A DNA stretch of 64,000 nt, taken from sequence record ON529851.1; one strand, 5' to 3'. Positions 17,388 to 32,464 of this stretch are shown piece by piece. The translations under genes and the position numbers were made by a program. Every line of letters starts with the position of its first letter. The stretch's first letter is position 1. Under the pieces are notes generated by a model. That model saw only the letters and a list, made by a program, of their open reading frames with translations. It was not told the origin of the DNA and did no database searches.

Positions 17388-17935
17388 AGGTCGTCTTGTT
17401 GGACTCTGCGGGCGCGGTCGTCGGCTACACGGCGGTGGGCGCCTTGCCGGTCGAAGCCCCGCAGCAAATCCCCGATCTGCTGGAGCATCGCGGCGTCTAC
17501 TACGCCCTGCAACCGCGCGAGGCCTTCCCCGAGGCCTTGGGCAACTGCGAGGCGGTCTTCAAGCAAGCCATCCTCGGCGACATCACGACCCCGGTCTATG
17601 CCGACAAGGTCGACGGGCTGGCGCTGAGGACCCTGGAAGGTCTGAAGTGGTTTCTGGCGCAACCGCGTGACGTCGTTCTGATCGATGACCCGCAGACGCA
17701 GGCCATGGTCGGACGGGGTGAAGCCCTCCTGGCGGCGACGGCGCCGCTGCATCCACACAACGCTCAGGTCCTCCAGGACCTTCGCGTCGCGGTCGCCGAG
17801 GCCCGCTACTGGATGAAGCCGGACCCTGGCACCGCCAGGGCCGTGGTTCAGGCGCGTAATCGCCATCACATCGCGGCGTCCAAGACCGCCTTCGCCCAGG
17901 CGATGCTCCACCCGCAAAACGAGGAACACCCATGA
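17384..17935 (+). CDS. hypothetical protein
   Basis: ATGA overlaps at both ends. Confidence 0.65.
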   Translation: MKVVLLDSAGAVVGYTAVGALPVEAPQQIPDLLEHRGVYYALQPREAFPEALGNCEAVFKQAILGDITTPVYADKVDGLALRTLEGLKWFLAQPRDVVLIDDPQTQAMVGRGEALLAATAPLHPHNAQVLQDLRVAVAEARYWMKPDPGTARAVVQARNRHHIAASKTAFAQAMLHPQNEEHP

Positions 17936-18246
17936 ACTGGCTCTTCTACGGGCAAAACCCGGACGCCCCGCGCGGGCCGTGCCGCCGACGGTTCCTGCCC
18001 ATTGCCCTGGCGGGCGCCGCCGCCCTGTCGGGCTGCAAGGGCGTGGCCGAGGAAATCCAGGCGGTCGGCATGCAGGCCCGCGACGACTTGATCGCGGGGA
18101 ACACCTACCACTACGATCCCCGTGTGAACCTCTGCTTCGCGGTCGGCTCCTATGCCCGCACCGGAAACTTCACCGACAACCTGACCCAGTCCTATGTGCC
18201 CTGCACCGACGCGGTCATGGCCCAAGCCCTGAAAGACGCCCCGTGA
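17932..18246 (+). CDS. putative lipoprotein
   Basis: RRR-hydrophobic-LSGC lipobox. Confidence 0.6.
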   Translation: MNWLFYGQNPDAPRGPCRRRFLPIALAGAAALSGCKGVAEEIQAVGMQARDDLIAGNTYHYDPRVNLCFAVGSYARTGNFTDNLTQSYVPCTDAVMAQALKDAP

Positions 18247-19100
18247 GTTATATCGCCCCCGTCCTGCCGCACGACGTCTACGGCGAGGCCAATGTGCGCC
18301 TCGGCCGCGTGGAGTCCGAAGAGAACGTCACCATCCTGTTCGCGGTGGAGTCCGGGTCGCGCGCCTGGGGCTTCCCCTCGCCCGACAGCGACAACGACGT
18401 GCGCTTCTTCTACGTGCGCCCGATCAGCCACTACCTGGGCCTGGAGTCCCCGCGCGACGTGATCGAACGCCCGATCGAGGACCCGTGGGACCTGAACGGC
18501 TGGGACCTGCGCAAGGCTCTGCAACTACTGGTCAAGGGCAACGCCACCGCCATGGAATGGCTGTCGAGCCCGCTGATCTATCGGGAGCACGGTCCGCTGC
18601 CGGCGCGCCTGCGTGACCTGATCAAGCGTCACGCCTCTCCGGAATCCAGCGCGCGTCACTATTTCGGCCTGACCCGGCAATGCTACGCCGGCGAAATCAG
18701 CAACCGGCCGACCGCCGCCCAGAACGCCCGGAACGAGGCTGACGGCGTCATCGTCAAGGGCCTGACCCAGGTCAACCTGAAGAAGTACCTCTATGCGGTG
18801 CGCGGCGCCATGTCGATCGCCTGGATCGCCCGCTACAAGGAGGTGCCGCCGATGACGATGCCGGCGCTGATGAGCCACGCCGTAGCCTCCGAAGCCGTCG
18901 CGGCCGAGATCACCACCCTGCTGCGGCGCAAGGCCACCATGGGCGAGTTCGGTCACGGCGATCGCATCGCGGTGCTGGATGAGTTCATCGAAGCCCAGAT
19001 GGACTGGGTCAAGGCCCAGGGTTTCGACCGCCTGCCGATGAGCGAGGCCTTCGCCGCCGAGGCTGAACAGCTTCTGCTCGACGCCCTGGGGATCGGCTGA
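18243..19100 (+). CDS. Pol-beta superfamily nucleotidyltransferase (RlaP/YcgL-like)
   Basis: AVESGSRAWGFPSPDSDNDVRF (GS..DxD), WDLRKAL, N...EWLSSP..Y, KKYLY; GTGA overlap. Confidence 0.88.
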   Translation: MSYIAPVLPHDVYGEANVRLGRVESEENVTILFAVESGSRAWGFPSPDSDNDVRFFYVRPISHYLGLESPRDVIERPIEDPWDLNGWDLRKALQLLVKGNATAMEWLSSPLIYREHGPLPARLRDLIKRHASPESSARHYFGLTRQCYAGEISNRPTAAQNARNEADGVIVKGLTQVNLKKYLYAVRGAMSIAWIARYKEVPPMTMPALMSHAVASEAVAAEITTLLRRKATMGEFGHGDRIAVLDEFIEAQMDWVKAQGFDRLPMSEAFAAEAEQLLLDALGIG

Positions 19101-19315
19101 TGGCGACGCTTCGTCTGCGCATCGTCGAGGTCGGCGCCGAAGGCGGCTTCCTGATCGAGCGGCGCCGGTGGTGGGGATGGGACGCCGTCGCCGTGCATGA
19201 TACTGTGTCCGAAGCCCATGACGACGCGATCGCCATGGGCGTGATGTGGCGGCGGGTCCGAGGCTACGCGGATACGGCCCGCGTGCGCATCGTCGCGAAC
19301 CACGCCTACGCATGA
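19100..19315 (+). CDS. hypothetical protein
   Basis: TGATG coupling. Confidence 0.6.
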   Translation: MATLRLRIVEVGAEGGFLIERRRWWGWDAVAVHDTVSEAHDDAIAMGVMWRRVRGYADTARVRIVANHAYA

Positions 19316-19563
19316 GCGCCCAGGCCATTCATCTGCTGGCGCTGGTCGTGCTGTTCCCGACCACGATCGCGTCGTTTGTCTGGTTCCTCATGGCGTGGGG
19401 TTTCCGGGGCGGCTTCGGCGTCACCTGGCGCTCGGTCATCCTGTCCGGCGCCGTCTTCCTGACGCTGTTCATGACCCTGGGCGTGGTCCTCTACCATCCC
19501 TACGCCCTGCCGAACCTCCTGTCGGGCATCGTCCTGCCGCCCAACCCCTTCAAGGTGCCCTGA
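19312..19563 (+). CDS. small membrane protein (2 TM)
   Basis: hydrophobic; ATGA overlap. Confidence 0.65.
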   Translation: MSAQAIHLLALVVLFPTTIASFVWFLMAWGFRGGFGVTWRSVILSGAVFLTLFMTLGVVLYHPYALPNLLSGIVLPPNPFKVP

Positions 19564-19914
19564 ATGGCCGTCGAGATCATCCAAGCCTACGCCGCCTTCG
19601 AGACCACGGATGAATTCGGTCGGCTCGGCGGAGTCTACGGCTATTATCAGAGCGAAATCGCCGCGCAGGCGGCGGCGGCGTGCATCGGCTGGTGGGGCGG
19701 TCCGGGGAGGGTCGTGCCGCATACGCTGATCGTGGCCGACGGGCGGTGCTACCCGATCATGTCCGGACAGGAAGCGGGTTTCGACCGCGACCTCCTCGAC
19801 AAAAACCTGATTGAGGAATCCCGCAAGACCAAGGCGGCCGCCTGGCGCAAAATCCAGGCGACGCTGACGCCGGATGAGATCGAAGAACTCGGCCTGAAGG
19901 AGCCCAAGGCATGA
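19564..19914 (+). CDS. hypothetical protein
   Basis: operon packing. Confidence 0.65.
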   Translation: MAVEIIQAYAAFETTDEFGRLGGVYGYYQSEIAAQAAAACIGWWGGPGRVVPHTLIVADGRCYPIMSGQEAGFDRDLLDKNLIEESRKTKAAAWRKIQATLTPDEIEELGLKEPKA

Positions 19915-20276
19915 CCAATCCCGTCGTCCTGATCGTCGAGGAGACGATCCAGCGCGCCTACAAGCTGGACCTCGATAATCCCGCCCACGCCGAACTGGTG
20001 GACCGGGTGCTGAACAATCCTCTGGACCGCCCGGCGGTGTTCGCCTTCGATCGCCACACCCCGCCGGCCTTGTTGGGCAAACGCGCCCTCAAGGGCAATC
20101 GCACGCCCTGGATCAGCGCCACGACCGCCAAGGGCCACCAGGTGCGCCTGGACCCGGACGCTGAGCACGCCGTCAACTCGATGATGACGCTGCTGCACGT
20201 CGACGAGAAGGGCAAGGCCTATCATCAGGTCAAGATCAAGCGCACCACGGTGGAGCGCGGGCCGGTGAAGTCGTGA
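19911..20276 (+). CDS. hypothetical protein
   Basis: ATGA overlap, AAGGAG RBS. Confidence 0.65.
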   Translation: MTNPVVLIVEETIQRAYKLDLDNPAHAELVDRVLNNPLDRPAVFAFDRHTPPALLGKRALKGNRTPWISATTAKGHQVRLDPDAEHAVNSMMTLLHVDEKGKAYHQVKIKRTTVERGPVKS

Positions 20277-20590
20277 GTGCTGTGATGCTTTGCCCCGAAA
20301 ACGCCGTGACGGTGGTCGGCGCGCCGCGCGATAAGAGCGGCCCGATCCTCCTGCGCCTGCACGCCAGTCACTACGCCCAGGCGGTGCAGGCGCTTCTGGA
20401 AGAGACGGCCGCCGACCTGCGTGACGATCTGAGCCCTGAAGAAGAGGCGGACCCGCAGGCTCAGGCCGACGCCGACCAGCAGGCCTGGAACGACGCCTGC
20501 GACCACTTCACCTCGGTGAAGGTCTATCGCGGCCACCCGCCGGAAGGATCGGACGTCGTGGCGTCGCTCCCGCTGATCCATGAGGAATAG
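20273..20590 (+). CDS. hypothetical protein
   Basis: GTGA overlap. Confidence 0.6.
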   Translation: MSAVMLCPENAVTVVGAPRDKSGPILLRLHASHYAQAVQALLEETAADLRDDLSPEEEADPQAQADADQQAWNDACDHFTSVKVYRGHPPEGSDVVASLPLIHEE

Positions 20591-20821
20591 ATGGCGCCCG
20601 GTTTCTATGTCGTGCGGATGCCGAAGAACGGCGCCGGCAGCCGCCTGATCGTGGAGAGCCGGCCGTTTCAGAAGATCGCCTGGATCGAGACACAGGAGCC
20701 GGGTTGGGCGCGGCGCCAGGCTGAACTCTGGTGTGACTTCGTCCAGTCGCAGCACCCCAAAGACGACGTCTTCGTGATCGAACGTAAAGGCCCCGAGATC
20801 GAGGCGGCGCGCGATGAATAA
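20591..20821 (+). CDS. hypothetical protein
   Basis: GAGG RBS; abuts upstream stop. Confidence 0.6.
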   Translation: MAPGFYVVRMPKNGAGSRLIVESRPFQKIAWIETQEPGWARRQAELWCDFVQSQHPKDDVFVIERKGPEIEAARDE

Positions 20822-21359
20822 CAAGCCACCGTGCAAGAAGGGCTTCCTGGCGAAGACGGTGCAGGACCTGGGCAGGCTTACGCAGCATTTTGACCTGGCG
20901 CCGCCCGAGGGCCACGACCTGAGTCTGAAGGCGCTGGAGCAGCAGGCCTGGGACTGGTTCGCCCAGGTTCTGCATCCGGTTGGGCTCGCTCTACATGATC
21001 TCAGCCTCACTTCCCGTCAGCAGCCCATGGACCGTCGCTGGGGAATCGCGCTGAACATCGCCTACGCGCCCGCGACGATCGGCTCGCTGGTCGTCATCAA
21101 CGTCCCGCCCTCGCGGGCTCCCGAGGGAAGTCGCGACTGCGTCGGCCTGCTGCTGGCGGCGGACCGGGAACGGACCTCGACACGCCTCTATGCGGAAGAC
21201 GGCGGGCCGGTGGGGTGGGGTGCTCGCTATCACCTGCAACGCCTCGACGGCTCCGTGCAGACCTGGGGCAACTGCACGCCGCGCGCCCTGATCACCCACC
21301 GCACGATCGAGATGTGCCGCACCCTCCACCGAGACGTCTACGGAGCGCGCAATGAATGA
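20814..21359 (+). CDS. hypothetical protein
   Basis: 8-nt overlaps with neighbours. Confidence 0.6.
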   Translation: MNNKPPCKKGFLAKTVQDLGRLTQHFDLAPPEGHDLSLKALEQQAWDWFAQVLHPVGLALHDLSLTSRQQPMDRRWGIALNIAYAPATIGSLVVINVPPSRAPEGSRDCVGLLLAADRERTSTRLYAEDGGPVGWGARYHLQRLDGSVQTWGNCTPRALITHRTIEMCRTLHRDVYGARNE

Positions 21360-21618
21360 ACCTCTGACACCTGCCGAGATCGATGAAGGCTGGAGGGCCG
21401 AGCCCTGCGGCTGCGCCTATCACCCTGGCTCCAGCACCCCGCGCCGCATCGACGGCGGCATGGTCGTGGTCAACGAAGGGTTCCGGCGACGGTGGTGTCA
21501 GGCGCACACCGACGAGATCATGCAAAAGCGTGACGCCCTGCGCCAGCGCCTGTTCGAAGCGGCGGACCTACCGACGCCCAGCCCGATGACGTTGTGGCTG
21601 CGGCGGAACCGCTGCTGA
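21352..21618 (+). CDS. hypothetical protein
   Basis: GGAG RBS; operon packing. Confidence 0.55.
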   Translation: MNEPLTPAEIDEGWRAEPCGCAYHPGSSTPRRIDGGMVVVNEGFRRRWCQAHTDEIMQKRDALRQRLFEAADLPTPSPMTLWLRRNRC

Positions 21619-21619
21619 C

Positions 21620-22090
21620 ATGGCGGTTCTCGACATCGGCTCGTGGAAGCCCTGGCCCTCGGGCGCCTTGTCCAACTTCCCGCCCCACGCCTTCGTGTTC
21701 GAAGACGTCGAGTGCGCCTCCATGGAGGGGCTGGTCCAGGCGTTCAAGTTCAACGAGCCCTATAAGCAGGTCATCACCTGCAAGGCCGTGGGCGAGGCCG
21801 CCAAAAACATGGGCCGCCGGCGCAACCTGCATTGGCAGCGCGCCCAGACCCTGTGGTGGAAGTCCGACGCCTACGACCGCCATGGCCCCGAATATCAGGC
21901 CCTGCTGGATCGCGCCTACAACGCCCTGGCGACCAACCCCGATTTCCGCGACGCCTTGCTCGCGACGGGCGATGATTTCCTGACCCATTCGATCGGCGGG
22001 CGCGATCCGCACGAGACGATCCTGACCGAAGCCGAGTTCTGCACCCGGCTGATGCGGCTACGCCGCGAAATCCGCGAAGGCCTGAGATGA
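21620..22090 (+). CDS. T4 gp30.3-like NADAR-superfamily protein
   Basis: LSNF.PH.FVFEDVECASMEGLVQAFK, QTLWW, ALLATG...LTHSIG, TILT..EF. Confidence 0.85.
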   Translation: MAVLDIGSWKPWPSGALSNFPPHAFVFEDVECASMEGLVQAFKFNEPYKQVITCKAVGEAAKNMGRRRNLHWQRAQTLWWKSDAYDRHGPEYQALLDRAYNALATNPDFRDALLATGDDFLTHSIGGRDPHETILTEAEFCTRLMRLRREIREGLR

Positions 22091-22341
22091 CCGCCCCCTG
22101 CATCTATTTGACGGCCCCGGCTGAACTGTACGAGGCCAAACGCTTCGGCGACGGTTGGCGCCCGGTCGCGCAGCCGGATCGCTTCCTGTGCGCCTGGGCC
22201 ACCTACCACGAGGACGCGGTCGCCGCGTTGTCGAAGGCGCCGCCCTGGCTGGTGACCAACGCCCTCGCCGGCCACCTGGTGCGGGCGAGCAAGGATTGCC
22301 CCCGGTGCCCCTACTACCAGGCGGGCGATCCCGTCGAATAG
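22087..22341 (+). CDS. hypothetical protein
   Basis: ATGA overlap. Confidence 0.6.
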   Translation: MTAPCIYLTAPAELYEAKRFGDGWRPVAQPDRFLCAWATYHEDAVAALSKAPPWLVTNALAGHLVRASKDCPRCPYYQAGDPVE

Positions 22342-22401
22342 CCGTAAATCCTGACATTTTCTGCCGTATTTCTTGACACCAACCACGGCGTTAACCATAG
22401 T
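22339..22401 (+). promoter_or_regulatory. promoter of RNA ligase operon with tandem CGT boxes
   Basis: GCCGTAAATC-CTGACA then CTGCCGTATTTC-TTGACA-17 nt-CATAGT. Confidence 0.65.
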
Positions 22402-22433
22402 CCGAGGCTTGAACCCCGACCTCAGGACTTGCC

Positions 22434-23672
22434 GTGAGCACCTTTGCTGTTCCGATCCTCGCGATCGACGACGTCTACGATCACCCCAACGCTGATCGAC
22501 TCTCCATCATCCGTATTCGCGGCTACGAAGCCGTCGCCGGCAAGGCCGAGGACGGCTCGCACCGCTTCGCCAAGGGCGAACGCATCATCTACGTGCCCGA
22601 GGGCGCGGTGGTGCCGGACCAGCACCTGAAGGAGCGCGGCTACTGGAACGAGGCCAAGGGCGTCGGGCTGCTGGCGGGCACAAAGGGCAACCGCGTCAAG
22701 GCCATCACCCTGCGCGGCGTGCTGAGCCAAGGCCTGGTCTGGAAGACCGAACCCCTCACGGGGGCGAAGGTCAAGGATCGCGTGACCGGAGACATCGTGA
22801 CCCAGGTGAACCCTGAGAAACCCGCTCTGGCGATCGCCACGGCTGAAGACGGCACGCAGACGGCGGTGATGGTCGATTTCGGCGACGACGTCGCCGACTT
22901 CTTCGGCATCACCAAGTACGATCCGCCCATCCCGCCGGGCCTGGACGGCGACGTCTTCGGTCTGTTCGAGGCGATGTTCAACTACGACATCGAGAACGCC
23001 AAGGCCTTCCCGAACCTGTTCACCGAGGACGACATCGTCACGGTGACGGAGAAGCTGCACGGCACCTTCTGCCGGATGACCTACATGCCCGGCATCGAAC
23101 CGCGCGAGGACCTGTTCGGCGACGGCCGCGTGGCGATCACCTCCAAGGGCCTGGGCGCCGACGGCCTGGTGTTCAAGAACACCGCCTTCAACCGCCAGAA
23201 GAACGTCTACGTCCGTAACATGCTGCCGCTGGTGGACCACTTCGTCTCGGCCTGCAACCAGGACGCCAAGGGCCTGACGGTCCACCTGATGGGCGAGGTT
23301 TACGGCGCCGGCGTGCAGGACCTGAAGTACGGCCGTACCGAGGATCAGGGCTTCGCCGCCTTCGACGTCTGGATCGAGAAGTCTGGCTTCCTGGCCGAGA
23401 TCGAGAAGGAGTACGCCTGCATCGCCTTCGGGGTGGAGCGGGTGCCGGTGTTGTTCGAGGGCTTCTACGACAAGGGCCTGATCGAGGACTTCGCCAAGGG
23501 CGACACTACGATCGACGGCGCCGAGAACATCCGCGAGGGCGTCGTCGTGACCCTGACCGGCGAGCAGGACAAACGCCCTGACGGCAACGGCCTGGGCGGA
23601 ACCCTGCGCCCGATCTGCAAGGTCGTGTCGGAAGCCTACCTGACCCGCAAGGGCGGGACCGAACTGCAATAG
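22434..23672 (+). CDS. ATP-dependent RNA ligase (DRB0094/Rnl2-like, N-terminal OB-like domain)
   Basis: TEKLHGT (KxHG), GEVYG, FAAFDV, REGVVV, KVVSEAYL; N-terminal HPNADRL. Confidence 0.9.
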   Translation: MSTFAVPILAIDDVYDHPNADRLSIIRIRGYEAVAGKAEDGSHRFAKGERIIYVPEGAVVPDQHLKERGYWNEAKGVGLLAGTKGNRVKAITLRGVLSQGLVWKTEPLTGAKVKDRVTGDIVTQVNPEKPALAIATAEDGTQTAVMVDFGDDVADFFGITKYDPPIPPGLDGDVFGLFEAMFNYDIENAKAFPNLFTEDDIVTVTEKLHGTFCRMTYMPGIEPREDLFGDGRVAITSKGLGADGLVFKNTAFNRQKNVYVRNMLPLVDHFVSACNQDAKGLTVHLMGEVYGAGVQDLKYGRTEDQGFAAFDVWIEKSGFLAEIEKEYACIAFGVERVPVLFEGFYDKGLIEDFAKGDTTIDGAENIREGVVVTLTGEQDKRPDGNGLGGTLRPICKVVSEAYLTRKGGTELQ

Positions 23673-23687
23673 GAGTCACGTTTTCCG

Positions 23688-24032
23688 ATGCAGTCGCTTC
23701 AAGACGGCCTGGTCGAATGGGCCACCTACGCCTTCGGGCGTGAAACGATCGACGACCAGCGCCAGCGCGCCATGCGCTGCCTGGAAGAGGCGGTCGAACT
23801 GGCCCAGGCCCTGGGCGTGGATGAGGCGGCCTGCCACCGGCAGGTCGTCCACACCTACGGCCGCCCCGTGGGCGAACCCGCCCAGGAGGTCGCCGGCGTC
23901 ATCAACGGCGCCCTGATGGCGGCCGAGAGCATCGGCGTCGACGGCCTGCTGGTCGCCGAGGCTGAACTGGAGCGGGTCTGGCTCTGCGTGGACGACATCC
24001 GCGTCAAGCAACTGGCGAAGGTTCAGCCCTAA
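23688..24032 (+). CDS. MazG-like NTP pyrophosphatase
   Basis: RCLEEAVELAQA..QEVAGV acidic helical motif. Confidence 0.65.
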   Translation: MQSLQDGLVEWATYAFGRETIDDQRQRAMRCLEEAVELAQALGVDEAACHRQVVHTYGRPVGEPAQEVAGVINGALMAAESIGVDGLLVAEAELERVWLCVDDIRVKQLAKVQP

Positions 24033-24035
24033 GCC

Positions 24036-25970
24036 GTGGCCCACATCGACTATGAGAACAACCTGTTCCTCGGACGGGGCACGTTCGAGGAACGGGAAAT
24101 CTTCCGTGACGTCCTGGGCAAGTTCCAAGGCTTCACCTTCTCGAAGGAATACGGCTGCTGGGTGACCGGCGACGTCCACATGGCCCAGGCGGTCAAGGGC
24201 GTCGTCTGGACCGACCGGGCCATGGGGCGGCTCAACACCCTGCTGGAAGCCGCCAAGATCAGTGAAGAACTGTCCTGGCGGGCTGACACGTCCTATGTGC
24301 CGCCGTCGCCGCCAGGGTTGAGTTATCTCCCCTACCAGCGCGCCGGGATCGAATACGCGTTGATGCGAAAGGACACCCTTATTGCCGATCAGCCTGGTTT
24401 GGGCAAAACTATACAGGCCATCGGTGTATTGAATGCTGATGAGACGATCAACTCTGCTCTATTCATCGTCCCCGCATCTCTAAAGATCAATTGGCACCGA
24501 GAGATCGACAAGTGGATGCTGCCCAACCTGACCTTCGGCATCGCCGAGGCCAAGCGGATCGACAAGGAGTTGATCGGCTACGCCAAGGCCTATGAACAGG
24601 TCGAGGACGGCGTCTACAAGTCCGGCCCCAAGGCCGGGCAGCCGAAATTCAAGAAGGTCGAGGTCCAGGGCAAGCCCAAGTATCGCAACGTCGAGACGTC
24701 GGACTACTGGCCCGACACCGACATCGTCATCATCAACTACGACATCCTGGAACGCTTCGCGGTCCAGATCAAGGAACGCAACTGGGACCTCCTGGTCTGC
24801 GACGAGTGCCATGCGCTCAAGAGCGCCGCGACGGGGCGCACCCTGTTCGTCCTCGGCGGCAAGCAGGAGTTCAACAAGACCCAGCGCGACAAGCGCAAGG
24901 CCGAGGGCCTGTCGACGCGCCCCGTCTGGCACCGCGCCATCGACGCCAGCCGCCGCGTCTTCCTGTCAGGCACGCCGATGATGTCGCGCCCGATCGAGTT
25001 GTGGCCGGTGGCGCACGCCTTCAACCCCTCCGGCCTGGGCCGGGACTACAACGACTTCGCCTACCGCTACTGCGCCGCCTGGACGACCGCCTACGGCCTG
25101 GACGTCTCGGGCGCCTCGAACCTGGAGGAACTGGGCCAGAAGGCGCGCGCCAGCTTCATGGTGCGCCGGCTGAAGCGCGAAGTGCTGCCGGAACTGCCGC
25201 CCAAGCGCCGGATCGTGGTCACGCTGGACAGCCCGGAAATCCGTGACCTGGTCGCCCGTGAGGACGAACTGGCCCAGGCGCTGCGACTCTATGAGAACGT
25301 CACCCTCAACAAGGGCGCGGTGGTCGACGAGATCAACCACGGCATCCAGATCGTCAACCACATGACGCGGATGGGGATGACGGACGAGTTCGATCCGGAC
25401 AACCCGAACTGGCGCTCCCTCGATCTGGATTACGCCGCCTCCGTCGCCGGCCTGGAGCCGCCGGCCGTCGCCATCCTGTTCGAGGAGATGGCGAAGGTGC
25501 GCCGCGACCTCGGGCTCGCCAAGCTGAGCGCGCTCAAGCCGTGGATGGACGACTTCCTGGAGGGCGGCGAGAAGCTGCTGATGTTCGCCTACCACTCCGA
25601 CGTGGTCAAGGCGCTGGCGTTGGCGGCCGAGAAGTGGAACCCGGCGGTGATCTGGGGCGGCACGCCGCTGCACAAGCGCCAGGGCGAGGTCGACAAGCTG
25701 CAAGGCGACGAAAGCTGTCGCCTGTTCATCGGCAACATCCAGGCGGCCGGCGTCGGCTTCACCATGACGCGCGCCCATGACGTCGCCTTCGCCGAGGGCG
25801 ACTGGGTGCCCAGCCAGATCGAACAGTGCGAGGACCGCGCCTGCCGCATCGGCCAGACGGCCGAGAAGATCAACAGCTACTTCCTGGTCGCGAACGGCTC
25901 GCTGGATTCCCGCATCGCCCAGGCCGCCAAGGCCAAGGAAGACAACATCAACCTGGCGATGGGCGCGTGA
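24036..25970 (+). CDS. SNF2/HARP-like SF2 helicase
   Basis: ADQPGLGKT, VCDECH, LSGTP, MVRRLK, GVGFTM, QCEDRACRIGQ. Confidence 0.92.
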   Translation: MAHIDYENNLFLGRGTFEEREIFRDVLGKFQGFTFSKEYGCWVTGDVHMAQAVKGVVWTDRAMGRLNTLLEAAKISEELSWRADTSYVPPSPPGLSYLPYQRAGIEYALMRKDTLIADQPGLGKTIQAIGVLNADETINSALFIVPASLKINWHREIDKWMLPNLTFGIAEAKRIDKELIGYAKAYEQVEDGVYKSGPKAGQPKFKKVEVQGKPKYRNVETSDYWPDTDIVIINYDILERFAVQIKERNWDLLVCDECHALKSAATGRTLFVLGGKQEFNKTQRDKRKAEGLSTRPVWHRAIDASRRVFLSGTPMMSRPIELWPVAHAFNPSGLGRDYNDFAYRYCAAWTTAYGLDVSGASNLEELGQKARASFMVRRLKREVLPELPPKRRIVVTLDSPEIRDLVAREDELAQALRLYENVTLNKGAVVDEINHGIQIVNHMTRMGMTDEFDPDNPNWRSLDLDYAASVAGLEPPAVAILFEEMAKVRRDLGLAKLSALKPWMDDFLEGGEKLLMFAYHSDVVKALALAAEKWNPAVIWGGTPLHKRQGEVDKLQGDESCRLFIGNIQAAGVGFTMTRAHDVAFAEGDWVPSQIEQCEDRACRIGQTAEKINSYFLVANGSLDSRIAQAAKAKEDNINLAMGA

Positions 25971-26386
25971 CCTCCCGCACCGCGTGGCAGAAAGAGATCG
26001 ACGACCAGTTCTGGGGCGGCGAACCGTTCGCCGTCCGTCAGCGCCGGGTCGAGGCTGAACGCCGCGAGCGGTGGTTCCAGGAAGTGCGCATCAATCCGTC
26101 GGCCGAGGTCCTGGTCGGGCTGTGCCGTACAGCGCGATCACAGGGTCTGCGCGGCATGCTGTACCAGGGAGACCTCTACTGGTGGCAGGCCTATTACGCC
26201 ACGCACCACGACGCCCTTCACTGGATGGCGATCCCCGGCAACAAACTGGCGTCCGGCGTGGAGTTGCACGTCTTCGACGACGGCGTAGGCCTGACCGCGT
26301 TCGAGCCGGCGGCTTTCGAAGCGTGTTTGAGCCACCCGAGCCTGATCGGCCGGATCGACGCTGAAGGCGTATTGATCAACACCTGA
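25967..26386 (+). CDS. hypothetical protein
   Basis: GTGA overlap. Confidence 0.6.
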   Translation: MTSRTAWQKEIDDQFWGGEPFAVRQRRVEAERRERWFQEVRINPSAEVLVGLCRTARSQGLRGMLYQGDLYWWQAYYATHHDALHWMAIPGNKLASGVELHVFDDGVGLTAFEPAAFEACLSHPSLIGRIDAEGVLINT

Positions 26387-26468
26387 CGGGCGCCGACGTT
26401 TTTCGCAACGCAACAAAAACGTGATAGGGGCGTTTCTTCAAGCTGTTCACCTCAGCTTCAGGGACCCC

Positions 26469-26798
26469 ATGCACACCCGTAATCCAGAAGAGTTCTCTCG
26501 TATCCTCGACGAGGCGGCCGAGCATATCGCGCGGCAGCCGATCCATCCCGGTCAGACCATGCCGGGGCTGTGGAGCCTGGATGACGGAACGCATGAGCCG
26601 GCGCGGCTGATCGGCGTGATCGTGGCCCTGGCGCTGGCGCAGGTGTGCAAGACCGGCGATTGCGACCTCCAGGAAGCGCTCGCCAGCTATGCCGCCGTCG
26701 CCCACGACATTCCCCTGATCGCCAAGGGCGGACCGGACGTGATCGCCGCGCAGAACCTGCGGGACGCCGCCCAGACCCTGCGAGAAGCGCGACACTGA
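26469..26798 (+). CDS. hypothetical protein
   Basis: AGGGA RBS; followed by terminator. Confidence 0.6.
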   Translation: MHTRNPEEFSRILDEAAEHIARQPIHPGQTMPGLWSLDDGTHEPARLIGVIVALALAQVCKTGDCDLQEALASYAAVAHDIPLIAKGGPDVIAAQNLRDAAQTLREARH

Positions 26799-26802
26799 CA
26801 CG

Positions 26803-26836
26803 AAAAAGGCCCGTCGCTGTCGAGCGCCGGGCCTTT
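26803..26836. terminator. bidirectional terminator closing the RNA island
   Basis: AAAGGCCCG/CGGGCCTTT stem. Confidence 0.8.
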
Positions 26837-26844
26837 GATCGTGA

Positions 26845-26931
26845 TGGAGGTGCGACCTGGACTCGAACCAGGATGAGGGTTTCCCCTACGGCTTATGAGG
26901 CCGCTGCCTATTCCAGCCGCGCCACCGCACC
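26845..26931 (-). tRNA. tRNA with CAU anticodon (Met or Ile2), long variable arm, U73
   Basis: acceptor GGTGCGG/TCGCACC-T-CCA; anticodon arm GCGGC-CTCATAA-GCCGT; V-arm AGGG-GAAA-CCCT; T arm CCTGG-TTCGAGT-CCAGG. Confidence 0.9.
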
Positions 26932-26942
26932 AAAAAGAAGTC

Positions 26943-27021
26943 CAGGCGTGCTCCCGTTACACTAAACCGGCGAGGGTCATGACCCTCGGGCGCCGGCTGC
27001 GGGGTTGAACCGCTCTGCCTG
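26943..27021 (-). ncRNA. circularly permuted tRNA mimic (YrlA-like module)
   Basis: order CAGGC, T arm GCGG-TTCAACC-CCGC, AGCCGGCG, palindromic hairpin GAGGGTCATGACCCTC, CGCCGGTT, TA, D arm GTGT-AACGGGA-GCAC, GCCTG. Confidence 0.75.
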
Positions 27022-27161
27022 TGTTTCCGCCGCTGCGCCATGCGAGCGCTGGCCGCTAAGCCAACGCCTGAGGGCTCGAACCCCGGCGACGAAGATTCGG
27101 ACCAGCCCGTCGGCCGGTCCACGAACGCCGCTGCGCCGAGGGAGGCGCCGAGGCGATCGAA

Positions 27162-27239
27162 TGGGAGCGGGGACACGATTCGAACGTGCGATCTCTTGGT
27201 TATGAGCCAAGAATGTTGACCGGGCTACACTACCCCGCG
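27162..27239 (-). tRNA. tRNA-Met(CAU), initiator-like
   Basis: CGCGGGG/CCCCGCT (C1xU72 mismatch), CTTGG-CTCATAA-CCAAG, GCACG-TTCGAAT-CGTGT, encoded CCA. Confidence 0.9.
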
Positions 27240-27250
27240 ACTCTTAGGCG

Positions 27251-27620
27251 CCAGTTCCGACGGCAGTGCGCCGGCTGGTACTCAACGGACTCCTCCGCCG
27301 ACCCTGCGCCAGGAACCATGGCGGACGCAGGATCAAGACGAAGGCGTTGCTTTACACCCACCTTGGACGTCGGACCCGTCGGGCCGACGAAACTTTGACC
27401 AGGGGTTATGGGACGAGTAATCCCGCCCTCTGGCCCGGCGGACTACTAGGCCTGCCCTTGCCTGGGCTCCCCCAGACGTCCGGCACGACTTTTGGTCAAC
27501 CAACCTTTACTCACGAAGACGGACGTAGCACCCGGCGTGGATCGGAACTGGTAGGCCCCTCTCCTGAACGGGCCGCCGTGCTCTGGCGGTGGTCCGTCGT
27601 CATCGCCGCCGGCGTCCGCC
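27251..27620 (-). ncRNA. candidate structured ncRNA between tmRNA and tRNA-Met
   Basis: no credible ORF; 10-bp closing helix 27542-27551/27251-27260; flanked by RNA genes. Confidence 0.4.
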
Positions 27621-27629
27621 TGCGAGAGT

Positions 27630-27971
27630 AAAGTGGGGAACTTTCTGTTCCAAGGCCCGGCAAGCCGGGGTTCCCCATACCCGTGGTCGCCCTTAGGCGG
27701 CCAGGAGGACTCGTTCGCCAGCGGCGAAGTTGTCGTTGTGTGCTTCGACAGTTGTCAAAGTTGGATCGTGAGCAGCCCGAAGACCACCATGCAGACCCTA
27801 GCACTCGCCATTCAATCCCGTCACCAACGTCAATCGATACTGTTCGGCCCCTCAAACCGCGCCCGTCTCCCATTATAGGAGGGGGATTGGTGGAGCCGAC
27901 GGGATTCGCACCCGTGTCTTGCCCGTCTGTTTCGTTCTCTCTGCTTCGGTCCGGAGACCTCCGCGCGACGA
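27630..27971 (-). ncRNA. ssrA: two-piece (circularly permuted) tmRNA, alphaproteobacterial type
   Basis: acceptor piece ends GACACGGGTGCGAATCCCGTCGGCTCCACCA (CCA 27888-27890); 36-nt spacer; coding piece starts GGGGCCG at 27851 (G3:U70, A73); tag frame 27743-27693 AHNDNFAAGERVLLAA*. Confidence 0.93.
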
Positions 27972-27977
27972 AATGCC

Positions 27978-28018
27978 TGTATACAGAGTCCGTTTCTGAG
28001 TGTCAAGCATTACGTCAA
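27978..28018 (-). promoter_or_regulatory. tmRNA promoter
   Basis: TTGACGTAATGC-TTGACA-17 nt-TATACA. Confidence 0.75.
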
Positions 28019-28026
28019 AGATTTTT

Positions 28027-28113
28027 TGGAGGGACGGGTGAGAATCGAACTCACGCCAGGCTTTCGCCAGGAGGATTTGCAGTCCCCCGCCTTACCACTC
28101 AGTCCACCGTCCC
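28027..28113 (-). tRNA. tRNA-Cys(GCA) with long variable arm
   Basis: GGGACGG/CCGTCCC-T-CCA (U73); GGGGA-CTGCAAA-TCCTC; ~16-nt extra arm CTGGCGAAAGCCTGG; GTGAG-TTCGATT-CTCAC. Confidence 0.9.
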
Positions 28114-28119
28114 CTGGTG

Positions 28120-28314
28120 TCGTTCTGGAGAGGGGAGCCCGCCCGTATCCGCCGCAGGTCCCGTGGTCGGTCCCGGCGGCGTCAGGGTTTCACGGCCCCA
28201 GGTCGACCCTCTCCCGTGATAGAGGGCGATACGCTGCGGACGGGCTCGCCTCTCCAGACGAGAAGGACCGCCCTGTTGCACTCCCCGGAGGGATCGTGTG
28301 GCGGCCCGTGACCC
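28120..28314 (-). ncRNA. candidate rod-shaped ncRNA upstream of tRNA-Cys
   Basis: promoter TTGCGG-17-TATAAG (28347-28319); stems TCTGGAGAGG/CCTCTCCAGA, GAGCCCG/CGGGCTC, CGTATC/GATACG. Confidence 0.55.
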
Positions 28315-28493
28315 TCGTCTTATAGCAGTGACGCCCCGTCCCCGCAACCGGAAAATGCCGACTATGTCTAAAATCCCGACACTTCCCGTTCAATTTGACA
28401 AGAAAATAGAGGATTGAACTTTATGTTAAGTCGTGCTACGCTCTTCGAGCGGCCGACATCAGTGCGCCGCGTCCTGCCAACGGAGACAACCAA

Positions 28494-29231
28494 ATGCTAC
28501 ACAGTGTTCATGGCGCCGTTCCCAAGCTTAAGCGCTGGTGCGGACCTTCCGCCATTTCCATCATTACCGGGCAGCCCTATCACCATGCTCTGGCGTTGCT
28601 CAAAGACGTCAAGGCGTCCAGGCGTACTTACCGCATCACGAAGGAGCCCGTCATCAAGGGCGCCTCGTCGCCAAGCGTGCGCACCGTCCTGAAGGACCTG
28701 GGCTACCGGACGACGCGGCGGGTGACGCCCTCAGGCGTCACCGTCGCGGCCTGGCTGGCGTCCCGACGACCCGACGACCTGTTCACGACCTTCCTGATCG
28801 TGGCGGCCAATCACTGGATGGTGGTGCGCGGCGACGAAGCCTGCTGCGGCATCCTCGGGACGCCGACGCCGGTCGAGCGCATGAAGTTCCGGCGCGGCGT
28901 CGTCACCGAGTGCTGGGTGGTTGAGGCGTCCGCGCAGGGCGTGGCGCCGATCGTCACCGAGGTGCGGGCCAAGCCGAGGGCGGCGGCGTCCGCCTGGGAC
29001 CGGCGTGAAGCGCGCGACCGCCGCGCTTTCGCCAAGCTGGCGCGCCAGCAGGGGTTCACCTACAAGATCGTGCGCGACTGCGACACGATCCGCTACATGG
29101 AAATCGACGCCTGCGGCCCGTTCCCCCAAGGGCTCGCCACCCTGCACCACGACTGGGCGGAGACCCTGGACCGGGTCCGGCACTGTCTGGAGCATCCCGA
29201 GGACGCCGCCGAGGGCAGCTACGGCCGCTGA
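28494..29231 (+). CDS. hypothetical protein, possible papain/C39-like Cys-His fold
   Basis: GGAG RBS; WCGPSAIS...NHWMVV; own promoter TTGAAC-17-TACGCT. Confidence 0.65.
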   Translation: MLHSVHGAVPKLKRWCGPSAISIITGQPYHHALALLKDVKASRRTYRITKEPVIKGASSPSVRTVLKDLGYRTTRRVTPSGVTVAAWLASRRPDDLFTTFLIVAANHWMVVRGDEACCGILGTPTPVERMKFRRGVVTECWVVEASAQGVAPIVTEVRAKPRAAASAWDRREARDRRAFAKLARQQGFTYKIVRDCDTIRYMEIDACGPFPQGLATLHHDWAETLDRVRHCLEHPEDAAEGSYGR

Positions 29232-29238
29232 ATGCAAG

Positions 29239-29270
29239 AGCCCCGACCGAGCGATCGGTCGGGGCTTTTT
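29239..29270. terminator. bidirectional intrinsic terminator
   Basis: AGCCCCGACCGA/TCGGTCGGGGCT stem then TTTT. Confidence 0.9.
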
Positions 29271-29279
29271 CTCGCCGTC

Positions 29280-29455
29280 GTCTGTTTCTCGGCCGGCGCA
29301 GCGTCAGGAGGGTGTGTCGCGAGACCTCCGTCACGGCTCCAGGGCGCTGGGTCCCCTGAAGCAATCCTCACCTGAACCGGGCTTTCCTCCCCAAGGGGCT
29401 GAAGGTGGCGGCGTCCAGGCGACCCTGCGGGGCTCACACGGCAAGGTCGCTTCTT
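29280..29455 (-). ncRNA. candidate ncRNA unit U4
   Basis: non-coding, hairpin-rich; shares CGTGACGG and an ACGCCG loop with U1-U3. Confidence 0.35.
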
Positions 29456-29529
29456 AATGCCAGGCATAGAAGTCGACAGGAGAAAGGGTTTTCCTATTCT
29501 CCAGCATTGGCGTGGTCCGATGTCGATGT

Positions 29530-29730
29530 AGCACAGCCTCTGGCTGCCGTCACGCCTGGTTCCCATTTCTAGGACGGCGTTCTCCTCAGAAGACGGGTCC
29601 GGGTAGACCTCGTGCGGCTCTTCAGCGCCTGACGGAACTCGACGACGTGGTTGCCGGCCGTCTGAACTGGCGTCCCCAAGCGCTCCCAGGGGCATGCCGT
29701 AGGAGTGTGGCAGGGTCCGCCCCACGCTGT
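29530..29730 (-). ncRNA. candidate ncRNA unit U3
   Basis: promoter TTGACT-17-GTATAT; 3' pseudoknot motif GGA-GAACGCCG-TCC...AGGCGTGAC. Confidence 0.6.
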
Positions 29731-29764
29731 GTCAGGATATACGACAATGAAGAGGGGGAAGTCA

Positions 29765-29995
29765 ACACCGCCTCTGGCGGCCGTCACGCCTGGTCGTTCG
29801 TCTCGGGCGGCGTTCCCGTCAGGCCTGATTGTCCCCGGCCGAGGTTTGTTCGGGGGAGCGGTGCGGTCAATCACCCCGACTCACGTTCTCTCGTAACCCG
29901 GCAGTACGGGCTTAAGCGCGCACGAGCGCTGCAAGGCAGTCACGCGGTGGTCCGCCTGTGGTGGGGCTTCAAATCCAGTCGCGCAATCCCCGCCT
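29765..29995 (-). ncRNA. candidate ncRNA unit U2
   Basis: promoter-like TTGACC-17-CATATA; same 3' motif; 27/29 identity with U3 3' end. Confidence 0.6.
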
Positions 29996-30029
29996 ATATG
30001 TCAGGATTGTCGTCAACGGTCAAGATGGT

Positions 30030-30240
30030 AAAGGGCGCTCTCTCCCGGTCACGCCTTGTCCTGATGTCTCAGCCGGCGTTCGCTTCAGACAGTACGGCAT
30101 TCTCGGGGCCGTCCCACTCACCCGCTGTCGTCGGGCCTGTTCCCAGAGGAAGGTCTACCCCAGGACAGATTGCTCCGGAGGCCAGGTCAGGGGCAAACCC
30201 TGTGTGCTGCGCCTAAGGACCTTCAGCAAGCGGAGAGCCT
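30030..30240 (-). ncRNA. candidate ncRNA unit U1
   Basis: begins after rsr terminator; AGC-GAACGCCG-GCT...AGGCGTGAC; CTCTCC/GGAGAG end pairing. Confidence 0.55.
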
Positions 30241-30262
30241 ATCAGGATCAGGGCGAGAGGGC

Positions 30263-30298
30263 AAAGAAAAACGGCCCTGATCTTCAGATCAGGGCCGC
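30263..30298 (-). terminator. terminator of the Y RNA-rsr operon
   Basis: CGGCCCTGATC-TGAA-GATCAGGGCCG then TTTTTCTTT. Confidence 0.9.
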
Positions 30299-30354
30299 AT
30301 CAAACTTACGTTGTAGCGTAATTCCGCACGCGGATTACGAATACCCGTGCCGGA

Positions 30355-31740
30355 TCAGCCGACGACGTTTCCGTCCGAGAAGTCCATCGCTTCGACTTCC
30401 CGGATATAGCGCAGGACGCTCTCCGAGAAGCCGTCGATGTGGACCCACCCGTTGCCGTACCCGACACCATTCTGGTGGCTGGCGACGTTGATCATATAGG
30501 CCTTGTCGGCCTTGGGCGCCGGCAGTCGTCCGCCGCCCATGCCACTGCTCAGGGCGCCGTTCGCCTGTTCGTCAGTGATGACGATCAGTCGGTCGCAGGC
30601 GAACTGGCGGTTCACCACGTCCACGGCCTGGGCCAGGGCGGTGCCGCTGTGCGGCTGCGAACGGATCACCGCCTCGACCCCCGCCATGCCCTTGCGGGCC
30701 GGCACTTCCACGAGGCCGTTGGAGAAGGTCACGACGCGCACGTCGCCCGGCAGGATCGACGCCAGCGTCGCCGCCGCGTCCATCCGGGTCAGGTCCGACT
30801 TTCCGGACAGCTTGTTCCGCATGGAATAGGAGACGTCGACCATGACCACGGTCGATCCCGTGAAGGGTTCGGCCTGGTTGATCGAGGCCACCAGGGCGTC
30901 GTCCAGCGCCCGCTCGAACGAGGGCGCATAGCGCGCCGCCGCCGTGAAGCGGAAGGGCAGGACGCGATCCGCGCCCTTGCGCGCCCGGATCGCGGCGTTG
31001 ACCAGATCGCGATCGACGCCGGCCTGCTCCATGTTGCGCAGGTTGCGCAGCAGGGCGAGGTAGCCCAGCTTGCCGTCGGTCAGCAGACGCGTGAACGTCG
31101 CCTTCTTGTCCGCGCCGCCCGACAGGGCGACTTCCCAGGTGTCGGGCGCCGCCAGTTCGTTGTCGACCAGCTTCTTGTAGAGGGTCTCGCGGTCATCGTT
31201 CGCCGGCTTGGCGTGCGCCAGGAACAGGACGTCGCGCAGACGCACCGACTTGGCCCGATCGTATTTGGCGATCTGGTAGGCGTCGAAGTTGCCGAAGGCC
31301 ATCGACAGGCCCTTCTTCACCTGGGCCGACAACGGCGCCTTCTTGCCGTTCGAGCGCAGCGGGTTCAGCGCCCAGTAGAGGGCCAGGAACTCGCTCAGTT
31401 CGTCAGCGCGCTGAATGACGCGCGCGATGGTGAGCGACACCAGGGCCGAACCTGAGCCGCGCTGGGCCAGCACGACGAGCAGCAGAAGGGGAACGTGACG
31501 CAGCTTGGCGTCCTCGCGGGCCTCGACGGCGATCTGGGCGAGGGTCTCGACCGGAACCTCCTTGGCGAGGCTCTGGATACGGTCGGCGATCGACACGCCG
31601 CTCTCGTAGAAATTGTCTTCCCAGAGCAGGCAGGACATGACCGACCGGCGCAGGGCCTGCGTCTTGGTCATCCGATCGGCCGGCGCGCCTTCATGAGTTC
31701 GCGCGGTGGTCGCTTTGGGCTTTGCGTTGATCGACGCCAT
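30355..31740 (-). CDS. rsr: Ro60/Rsr-like TROVE + vWA RNA-binding protein
   Basis: THEGAPA, LRRSVMSCLLWEDNFYESG, KYDR..VRLRDVLFLAH, TWEVALS, LLRNLRNM, VLPFRF; vWA DVSYSM, GT, ITDEQ; AGGAGG RBS. Confidence 0.93.
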   Translation of the reverse strand: MASINAKPKATTARTHEGAPADRMTKTQALRRSVMSCLLWEDNFYESGVSIADRIQSLAKEVPVETLAQIAVEAREDAKLRHVPLLLLVVLAQRGSGSALVSLTIARVIQRADELSEFLALYWALNPLRSNGKKAPLSAQVKKGLSMAFGNFDAYQIAKYDRAKSVRLRDVLFLAHAKPANDDRETLYKKLVDNELAAPDTWEVALSGGADKKATFTRLLTDGKLGYLALLRNLRNMEQAGVDRDLVNAAIRARKGADRVLPFRFTAAARYAPSFERALDDALVASINQAEPFTGSTVVMVDVSYSMRNKLSGKSDLTRMDAAATLASILPGDVRVVTFSNGLVEVPARKGMAGVEAVIRSQPHSGTALAQAVDVVNRQFACDRLIVITDEQANGALSSGMGGGRLPAPKADKAYMINVASHQNGVGYGNGWVHIDGFSESVLRYIREVEAMDFSDGNVVG

Positions 31741-31782
31741 GATGGGTCCCCTCCTAAGTGTCTGTCGGCAGGATGACCTTGA

Positions 31783-31937
31783 GGTTGGGGAGGAAAAGTC
31801 GAAAACCCTTTCATACCGGTGCGTCTACCGTTTCCGCCACCCGCGCATTGTGGCGCGCGAGCCAGGACTTGAACCTGGAAGCCCTTGACGGGCGCCGGTT
31901 CCAGACGAAGTATGGGCTCTCTGCGCCATCCCCGACC
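31783..31937 (-). ncRNA. Y-RNA-like element D: permuted class II (Leu-like) tRNA mimic with internal GCCA
   Basis: ACCGG, V-arm GCCC-GTCAA-GGGC, T arm CCAGG-TTCAAGT-CCTGG, CTCGCGC-GCCA-CAAT-GCGCGGG, TG, D arm GCG-GAAACGGTAGA-CGC, CCGGT; outer stem GGTCGGGGA/TCCCCAACC. Confidence 0.85.
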
Positions 31938-31957
31938 TCGCGGTCAGTGAACTCTCC

Positions 31958-32095: not shown

Positions 32096-32108
32096 GGAAA
32101 AGCAGAAA

Positions 32109-32259: not shown

Positions 32260-32269
32260 CTGTTGGTCC

Positions 32270-32445: not shown

Positions 32446-32464
32446 CGACCCTGTCCGCGACAGT

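Follow-up and report, generated by a model that had tools for sequence, protein, structure and literature searches.

Systems that mend or guard RNA have been described in phages as well as in bacteria. The RNA repair repertoire of jumbo phages was described by Iyer, Anantharaman, Krishnan, Burroughs & Aravind (2021, Viruses 13:63; PMC7824862) in a data set that included Caulobacter jumbo phages. They listed many transfer RNAs (tRNAs), RtcB, ATP-dependent RNA ligases and the CCA-adding enzyme, with ROT/TROVE proteins in a small subset, saw RlaP as "functioning alongside the RNA ligases", and interpreted the repertoire as a defence against host attack on the translation apparatus. RlaP enzymes of Pseudomonas add one or two nucleoside monophosphates to damaged RNA 3'-OH ends, prefer damaged RNAs as substrates in vitro, and leave a 3'-OH product that suits 5'-phosphate ligases and not RtcB (bioRxiv 10.64898/2025.12.29.696909). 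In Salmonella, the RNA repair operon rsr-yrlBA-rtcBA is induced by tRNA fragments (PMC7790460). YrlA-like RNAs adjoin Ro60 in phages (Chen et al. 2014, PMC4201824), and the study of Ro60 from Thermus phage phiLo, citing Chen et al., counts CcrColossus among the phages with Ro60/YrlA and reports that host PNPase is bound by the phiLo Ro60-Y RNA complex and is less active in vitro as a result (PMC12135203). Here we analyse a window, namely a stretch of 64,000 nucleotides (nt) which by megablast is 100% identical to Brevundimonas phage vB_BpoS-Marchewka (ON529851.1, 348,421 bp, Dolichocephalovirinae), and which carries genes for RlaP, an RNA ligase, Ro60 (gene rsr) with Y-like RNAs, a transfer-messenger RNA (tmRNA) and three tRNAs. 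Window coordinates equal record coordinates minus 248000.

Compared with the jumbo-phage repertoire (PMC7824862), Marchewka was published later and stands outside the survey; its ligase belongs to the DRB0094/Rnl5 family, it adds a tmRNA and PTH2, and no kinase was detected with the AAA_33 model. Like the Salmonella operon, the genome has Ro60, tRNA-like YrlA-type Y RNAs and RtcB, but rsr and its Y RNAs do not share one transcription unit with rtcB, which lies about 48 kb away on the opposite strand, and the Y RNAs number five as against two in Salmonella. Orthologous Ro60 with YrlA-like RNAs upstream on the same strand is shared with CcrColossus, and the Ro60 resembles that of phiLo over the whole protein; the Marchewka array is however larger than in these phages, more varied in architecture, and in all its units below the Rfam YrlA gathering score. 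With the Pseudomonas rtcB-rlaP-rtcA operons (PfRlaP/PaRlaP) the locus has in common the Pfam family, the catalytic aspartates and a nearby RNA ligase, although the phage RlaP lies near a 5'-phosphate ligase and not beside RtcB. As in the anticodon-loop repair of phage T4 by Pnkp and Rnl1, a phage-encoded ATP-dependent RNA ligase may restore cleaved tRNA; unlike T4, the ligase is an Rnl5 with its OB domain first, RtcB offers an alternative route, and a polynucleotide kinase was not detected by that same AAA_33 model.

The region belongs to the accessory, non-structural gene complement of a jumbo siphophage. A preliminary description of it had read its genes as a distributed toolkit which together heals tRNA cut by host nucleases, or serves as decoy for it, and the toolkit concept as such is already in print (PMC7824862). 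In our view it is rather probable that the genes form several self-contained modules, each protecting RNA or translation during infection, and not one pathway. The proposed linkage is partly supported, in that RlaP and the ligase do belong to a conserved block that could plausibly act in repair, while the wider toolkit is better read as independent modules accumulated in a very large genome. The evidence consists of gene identities, intact catalytic motifs, RNA structures, synteny and phyletic patterns, for which the closest relatives by DNA identity are Bambus, Kabachok, Domovoi and Papperlapapp (91-97%), then Kikimora and Gurke (about 80%), then the Caulobacter phages CcrPW and CcrColossus, all by megablast.

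RlaP, the Rnl5 ligase and their conserved block

The RlaP protein covers nearly the full length of PF10127 (E 3.6e-72, 243.5 bits against a cut-off of 23, profile positions 6-248 of 249), carries the Pol-beta signature G38-S39 ... D50-N-D52 in its translation, and matches PHROG 14344, nucleotidyltransferase; the GenBank label of this open reading frame (ORF), "DNA polymerase", is wrong. A sequence search of PDB chains detected no match to it. The ligase scores 166.9 bits against the TIGR02306 equivalog RNA_lig_DRB0094, for which the cut-off is 151.15. With these matches the RlaP-like nucleotidyltransferase and the DRB0094-type RNA ligase of the preliminary description are both borne out, and profile searches of the whole record found one RlaP copy and one PF09414 ligase. 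The domain order of the ligase is unusual, the OB domain (PF21189/PHA02142, residues 9-103) standing before the nucleotidyltransferase domain (PF09414, 201-377), and the protein aligns collinearly in three segments with the Naegleria Rnl5 (NgrRnl) structures 5COT and 6VT4 (E 5e-8 for 5COT). Motif I, E206-K207-L-H-G with the KxxG lysine, is invariant in Marchewka, Domovoi and CcrPW. The ligase is predicted to seal 3'-OH/5'-phosphate nicks with an RNA 3'-OH strand.

In Marchewka the RlaP gene precedes the ligase gene by 3.3 kb on the same strand, and in CcrPW by 1.9 kb; its orthologues in CcrPW, CcrColossus, Kikimora and Gurke are 74-86% identical. The gene order RlaP, ORFs 19564 and 20814, gp30.3/NADAR-like protein, ligase, X114 (a small protein encoded directly after the ligase) and SNF2 helicase is kept in CcrPW with 33-74% protein identity, or 48-74% for the core block of RlaP, NADAR-like protein, Rnl5, X114 and SNF2; ORF 19911 has its CcrPW homologue upstream of RlaP. 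The same-strand block of RlaP, NADAR-like protein, ligase, small protein and SNF2 is common to CcrColossus and CcrPW. Individually, the gp30.3/NADAR-like protein is 62% identical in CcrPW and 71% in Kikimora at the same position, and the helicase 72-78% in CcrPW and Kikimora. The plus-strand genes at 15576-26798 overlap or are at most 92 nt apart, and terminator prediction gave none on the plus strand from 11.6 to 26.8 kb; with such dense packing and no predicted terminator, RlaP and the ligase may be co-transcribed. The earlier statement that the genes are not in one operon is thus too strong for RlaP and the ligase, which sit in this tight same-strand string. NAD-salvage, Ter, rIIA/B-like and NADAR-like genes also belong to the long plus-strand string.

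X114 stands behind the Rnl5 ligase in the Marchewka-group phages, CcrPW (48% identical) and CcrColossus, with the conserved motifs LEEAxELAQA and QExAGVxN, and is missing from Kikimora along with an intact ligase. Its AlphaFold2 model (all-alpha, pLDDT 60.6) found nothing below E 0.9 in a Foldseek search of the PDB. A cRec domain or a MazG-like enzyme was rejected, as this low-confidence model has no fold match, and so was a xylose isomerase-like protein, for which the Pfam E value of 0.007 does not reach the threshold and 114 residues are too short for a TIM barrel.

What became of the ligase in Kikimora and Gurke bears directly on how far the parts depend on each other. In both phages the gene is a 178-residue remnant at the same site, with the OB domain gone, motif I changed from K-L-H-G to R-P-E-G so that the catalytic K207 is replaced by R, motif III altered and the PF09414 match lost. 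Both nevertheless retain RlaP (86% identical), Ro60, RtcB and the tmRNA. RlaP being kept where the ligase decayed, it does not depend on the ligase. Marchewka, with the ligase, and Kikimora, which has lost it, were isolated on the same strain, B. pondensis LVF1 (PMC10070969), so the ligase is dispensable for plaquing on LVF1, and sister phages from one host strain with or without an intact Rnl5 ligase offer a natural comparison. Beyond this group, scanning IMG/VR with the ligase alignment brought up no more than CcrColossus, CcrPW and a single contig that holds just an OB-domain fragment, and near that fragment no other toolkit gene was found.

Ro60, the Y-like RNAs and the distribution of the parts

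The Ro60 protein contains a TROVE domain (PF05731, 47.1 bits) followed by VWA_2 and vWA_Ro60, matches the solved Ro60 of a Thermus phage (9KOP/9L5Y) over its full length (residues 11-451, E 1.6e-19), and is 70% identical to the CcrColossus Ro60; the earlier identification as Ro60/Rsr is secure. No coding signal was detected in the 990 nt that precede rsr (31741-32729, minus strand), and here five Y-like RNA units occupy 31777-32598, at most 860 nt upstream of rsr and on the same strand. The preliminary description had placed Y-like RNAs within 18243-31740: the RNAs are real, and their location is just past the end of that interval. Every unit has a long terminal stem broken by a common internal loop, with 5' GGUGGYG... 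and 3' ...UUCCCC. When compensatory pairs were counted against the Kikimora and Gurke orthologues, covariation supported four of the five units (Y1-Y4); for Y0 the stem nucleotides are identical in all relatives and the flanks diverged, so that the stem offers no variation by which to judge covariation. The layout of Y1, Y2 and Y4 is that of YrlA, the T arm preceding the D arm, within 4 kb of rsr. Y1 is the only unit that Rfam detects (YrlA, RF02553: 32.6 bits, E 5.7e-5), and it too falls below the gathering score of 69, as do the other four. Sub-threshold YrlA matches (27-52 bits) likewise occur upstream of rsr in CcrPW, CcrColossus, Gurke, Kabachok and a Xanthomonas phage. Y3 shows a weak tRNA-Sec-like match at 31991-32063, and its counterpart in Kikimora and Gurke is annotated "tRNA-Ser". 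In the unrelated phages RHph_TM30, Mvi-JY20 and Atuin, some "tRNA-Leu" annotations just upstream of rsr may also be tRNA-like modules of Y RNAs.

To ask how far the parts travel together, co-occurrence was counted by tblastn against 50,697 phage records. Relatives of this Ro60 occur in 97 records (crAss-like, Streptomyces, Xanthomonas, Rhizobium, Gordonia and other phages), RlaP in 76, of which 53 are from Pseudomonas phages, mostly phiKZ-like, and this Rnl5 ligase in 23; RtcB is far commoner, with 708 records, and is found in phiCbK and in all five relatives tested. RlaP, ligase and Ro60 are found together only in seven Brevundimonas giants, CcrColossus and CcrPW. Being confined to one lineage, the triple co-occurrence is a single evolutionary sample, and phylogenetic co-occurrence, which had been put forward as a check of the linkage, speaks against it. 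In the phiKZ-like phages with RlaP no Ro60 relative was detected by tblastn; in PA1C, RlaP lies 1 kb from RtcB.

The same conclusion is reached from the side of Ro60. Six independent Ro60-bearing phages were profile-searched for RtcB, RlaP and a PF09414 ligase, and four of these lineages have none of the three: crAss001 (103 kb), RHph_TM30 (208 kb), Mvi-JY20 (108 kb) and MET23-P3 (43 kb). Atuin (194 kb) has RlaP, with neither RtcB nor the ligase, and RsoM2USA (344 kb) has RlaP and two PF09414 ligases, with no RtcB; in both phages these genes are far from rsr. The Xanthomonas phage MET23-P3 has a Ro60 59% identical to that of Marchewka and two YrlA-like RNAs without the enzymes, which suggests from gene content that the Ro60/Y module moves, and would work, alone. 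Synteny agrees with this: in Marchewka rsr is 6.7 kb from the ligase with tRNA and tmRNA genes between, and in CcrPW it is about 30 kb from the ligase block, beside the same helix-turn-helix, dUTPase and ribonucleotide reductase neighbours as in Marchewka. Since the remote rsr of CcrPW has kept its own neighbours, the closeness of rsr and ligase in Marchewka is a rearrangement and not a conserved feature. The claim that Ro60/Y RNAs, tmRNA and tRNAs act together with the ligase is therefore not upheld: outside one clade the genes separate, and in Kikimora and Gurke the ligase alone was lost.

Readings of the repertoire

Under the modular reading that we favour, a first module would repair breaks. 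RlaP would extend trimmed RNA 3'-OH ends by one or two nucleotides, after which the Rnl5-type ligase would seal 3'-OH/5'-phosphate breaks in a duplex or stacked context, and RtcB would directly seal 3'-phosphate or cyclic-phosphate/5'-OH breaks. Classical anticodon nucleases leave cyclic-phosphate/5'-OH ends. No 5' polynucleotide kinase was found, AAA_33, the single Pfam model tried, having no match anywhere in the genome; hence the ATP-dependent ligase alone cannot fix such ends, and RtcB probably handles them because only RtcB joins them without a kinase, whereas RlaP and Rnl5 would serve 3'-OH/5'-phosphate breaks or trimmed ends. RtcB is the conserved ligase of this phage subfamily, and the preliminary description missed it although it is conserved in all five relatives tested. 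A second module, of supply and rescue, would use the 26 tRNAs, the CCA-adding enzyme, the tmRNA and PTH2 to replace lost tRNAs and free stalled ribosomes. In a third, by analogy with phiLo, Ro60 and the five Y RNAs would form a ribonucleoprotein (RNP) that engages host PNPase or other tRNA-binding factors and alters RNA decay. We infer every activity and every substrate in this scheme, and likewise host ribotoxins as the selective pressure. As for RNA repair in general, the earlier proposal fits the published biochemistry of RlaP and ligase and the synteny of the block in Caulobacter phages, and the lack of a match to the one kinase model counts against it.

Several points weigh against the modular reading. 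In bacteria rsr, Y RNA and rtcBA genes can share an operon, so a link between Ro60 and repair is possible (PMC7790460). In three further phage lineages (Rhizobium phage RHph_TM30, Microcystis phage Mvi-JY20 and Arthrobacter phage Atuin) rsr is found inside or next to an array of tRNA genes, a hint at a tRNA connection, although this may reflect only shared processing of small RNA genes. That no polynucleotide kinase was found with one Pfam model leaves the natural substrate of Rnl5 uncertain. In RNA-virome data, two runs contain about 10% of the sampled words of 26800-32740. Mapped to the stretch, they yield eight contigs of low depth, which cover the tmRNA and tRNA-fMet genes, rsr in part, and the beginning of the Y array; these low-depth pieces may be DNA carry-over, and because such libraries can contain DNA they are no proof of transcription.

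The opposite of separate modules would be one integrated system, in which a Ro60/Y RNP captures or mimics damaged tRNA and delivers it for repair by RlaP and the ligases, with the Y RNAs acting as nuclease decoys and tmRNA and tRNAs covering the losses that cannot be mended. All the components do coexist in this clade, the short distance between rsr and ligase in Marchewka with tRNA and tmRNA genes between them would fit, and the Salmonella operon is induced by tRNA halves, with YrlA suggested as a competitive inhibitor of anticodon nucleases (PMC7790460). We nevertheless hold such a system unlikely, as the co-occurrence is one evolutionary sample, rsr is remote from the ligase block in CcrPW and from RtcB, on the other strand, in Marchewka itself, and all the enzymes are missing from four of six independent Ro60 phages. 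Moreover, Y1, Y2 and Y4 have no anticodon arm and so cannot serve as decoys that anticodon-loop nucleases would cleave in place of tRNA; competitive binding of nucleases by the Y RNAs is possible by analogy with YrlA. A bolder form, to which we give little credence, would make the five Y RNAs, diverse in architecture and assembled from tRNA parts, adaptors that dock different tRNA-handling enzymes, namely RtcB, Rnl5, RlaP, the CCA-adding enzyme and host PNPase onto the Ro60 ring. If true, this would be a phage triage RNP in which broken tRNA is mended or degraded, and it would unite the scattered genes and explain why rsr stands beside tRNA arrays in several unrelated phages.

Two other explanations give the ligase or the whole set a different task. 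Naegleria Rnl5 ligase seals nicks and needs an RNA 3'-OH strand in duplex, and it is the closest solved relative of the Marchewka enzyme, whose invariant neighbours are the SNF2 helicase and the NADAR-like protein and for which neither a kinase partner (one AAA_33 model) nor a phosphatase partner was found. The block of NADAR-like protein, Rnl5, X114 and SNF2 could accordingly act on duplex nucleic acid and not on tRNA, either at RNA-terminated nicks in RNA:DNA hybrids during replication, recombination or repair, or after removal of ADP-ribose from bases. This appears improbable to us, since the phage already has an ATP-dependent DNA ligase of its own (553-1818), the conserved block also includes RlaP, an enzyme that acts on RNA 3' ends, and published analyses link RlaP with RNA ligases across jumbo phages (PMC7824862). 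It is also conceivable that the set serves housekeeping or host takeover and not counter-defence, with tRNAs and tmRNA matching late codon demand, Ro60/Y sequestering PNPase and thereby stabilising phage transcripts, and the ligases mending spontaneous or phage-induced RNA damage. Here the lowered PNPase activity in vitro with the Thermus phage Ro60-Y RNA complex (PMC12135203) and the shared isolation host LVF1 of ligase-bearing Marchewka and ligase-less Kikimora are in favour, but the flanking genes are typical of conflict (NAD salvage, Ter proteins, rIIA/B, NADAR) and the in vitro preference of RlaP is for damaged RNAs (bioRxiv 10.64898/2025.12.29.696909), so that we consider this very unlikely.

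For work on the modular reading as well as its rivals, this clade makes a practical system in which phage RNA repair enzymes and Ro60/Y RNPs can be tested during infection. Control runs on Caulobacter vibrioides gave no RtcB, TROVE, RlaP or PF09414, which means that these functions are phage-supplied in a host relative, and related Caulobacter phages infect a genetically tractable host without RtcB, Ro60, RlaP and this ligase family. The annotation is corrected in three respects: the "DNA polymerase" is RlaP, a two-piece tmRNA had been missed, and five Y RNAs had been unannotated.

Features of the window and of the remaining genome

Coordinates of features in the window, with two located elsewhere as indicated
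Feature	Coordinates	Strand	Basis or remark
YqeY/GatB-C-like domain protein	2683-3159	+	PF09424, E 5.9e-10, 39.8 bits (cut-off 27)
RlaP, Pol-beta nucleotidyltransferase	18243-19100	+	Pfam PF10127
T4 gp30.3/NADAR-like protein, two genes upstream of ligase	21620-22090	+	PF08010, E 1e-53; weak NADAR match
Candidate promoter-like site TTGACA-17-CATAGT, within the 92 nt between the ligase gene and its upstream neighbour	22373-22401	+	consensus scan, 10/12 matches
ATP-dependent RNA ligase, DRB0094/Rnl5 family	22434-23672	+	TIGR02306
X114, small all-alpha protein	23688-24032	+	always directly after ligase gene
SNF2-family helicase, conserved 3' neighbour of ligase block	24036-25970	+	SNF2-rel_dom and Helicase_C
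tRNA (CAU), 87 nt, long GAAA-capped extra arm, U73, encoded CCA	26845-26931	-	ARAGORN; Rfam tRNA 38.5 bits
Initiator-like tRNA-Met (CAU), 1:72 mismatch	27162-27239	-	ARAGORN; Rfam tRNA 53.2 bits
Two-piece (permuted) tmRNA	27693-27950	-	Rfam RF04321 tmRNA_permuted, 57.2 bits (gathering score 47)
tRNA-Cys (GCA), 87 nt, long GAAA-capped extra arm, U73, encoded CCA	28027-28113	-	ARAGORN; Rfam tRNA 44.5 bits
Ro60/Rsr orthologue, TROVE and vWA	30355-31740	-	Pfam
Y4, YrlA-like, terminal stem and permuted T-arm/D-arm module	31777-31942	-	12 compensatory of 39 consensus pairs
Y3, Y-like, normal-order tRNA-like core	31959-32094	-	3 compensatory of 36 pairs
Y2, YrlA-like	32107-32261	-	15-bp perfect terminal stem; 8 compensatory of 49 pairs
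Y1, YrlA-like	32270-32445	-	14 compensatory of 57 pairs
Y0, short stem-loop, no tRNA-like module, shared internal-loop motif	32513-32598	-	conserved stem
Class II aminoacyl-tRNA synthetase-like core protein, without recognisable anticodon-binding domain	59017-60270	-	PHROG 4806
RtcB	record 229681-230919	+	414 bits
Ligase remnant in Kikimora; equivalent in Gurke at same site	8133-8669 (Kikimora locus coordinates)		

The tmRNA, which scores above the Rfam gathering threshold, and the three tRNA genes that flank it, found by ARAGORN and Rfam, agree with the preliminary description, as does the YqeY protein; the genome paper of Marchewka had reported no tmRNA detected (PMC10070969). The acceptor piece has a CCA end (...GGCUCCACCA), and the predicted tag (...NDNFAAGERVLLAA) ends ...LLAA-TAA. 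Domovoi, Kikimora and CcrPW share all three conserved elements, acceptor piece, coding piece and tag, with tags ending in LAA (...RLAA in CcrPW), and the T arm has one pair with a compensatory change among relatives. The CcrPW counterpart of the initiator-like tRNA is annotated tRNA-fMet. The class-II shape of the other CAU tRNA and of the tRNA-Cys (GCA) is unusual for Met/Ile or Cys, and the pair occurs also in CcrPW.

The aminoacyl-tRNA synthetase-like core claimed earlier has a weaker basis. It matches PHROG 4806 ("histidyl tRNA synthetase") with E 1.8e-44, is 42% identical to CcrPW gp446, and has neighbours in the Atlas that carry the class II families tRNA-synt_2, 2b and 2d; a match to Pfam or NCBIfam was not found.

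Over the whole record, 26 tRNA matches were counted, 23 of them outside the window; a PolyA_pol/CCA-adding enzyme and PTH2 (record about 155053-155310) are present, and canonical Pth (PF01195) is absent. In Kikimora, PTH2 (3597-3989 in Kikimora locus coordinates) lies directly upstream of RlaP. The rtcB gene is about 36 kb upstream of RlaP and 17 kb before the window start (rsr being at record 278355-279740). Downstream of it on the same strand follow genes for HD-domain, metallophosphatase-like and Band_7/flotillin proteins and for NAD salvage, and neither archease nor PrfH was found among its neighbours.

Upstream of the RlaP block, two large plus-strand genes at 11763-15576, annotated "endonuclease" and "hypothetical" and without a Pfam match, sit at the rIIA/rIIB positions of the CcrPW and Kikimora annotation. 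Between the tRNA/tmRNA cluster and the noncoding region past rsr lies a 245-residue ORF (28494-29231, plus strand) without a family, 37% identical in Kikimora, whose Atlas neighbours are all viral. The noncoding region itself (29232-30354, minus strand), which is 1.1 kb long and lies downstream of the rsr terminator, has no coding signal and no Rfam family match and is conserved in relatives; it holds the motif AGGCGTGACGGnnnCCAGAGG twice (29537-29557 and 29771-29791), and the hairpin arm of the motif covaries between the Marchewka and Kikimora groups.

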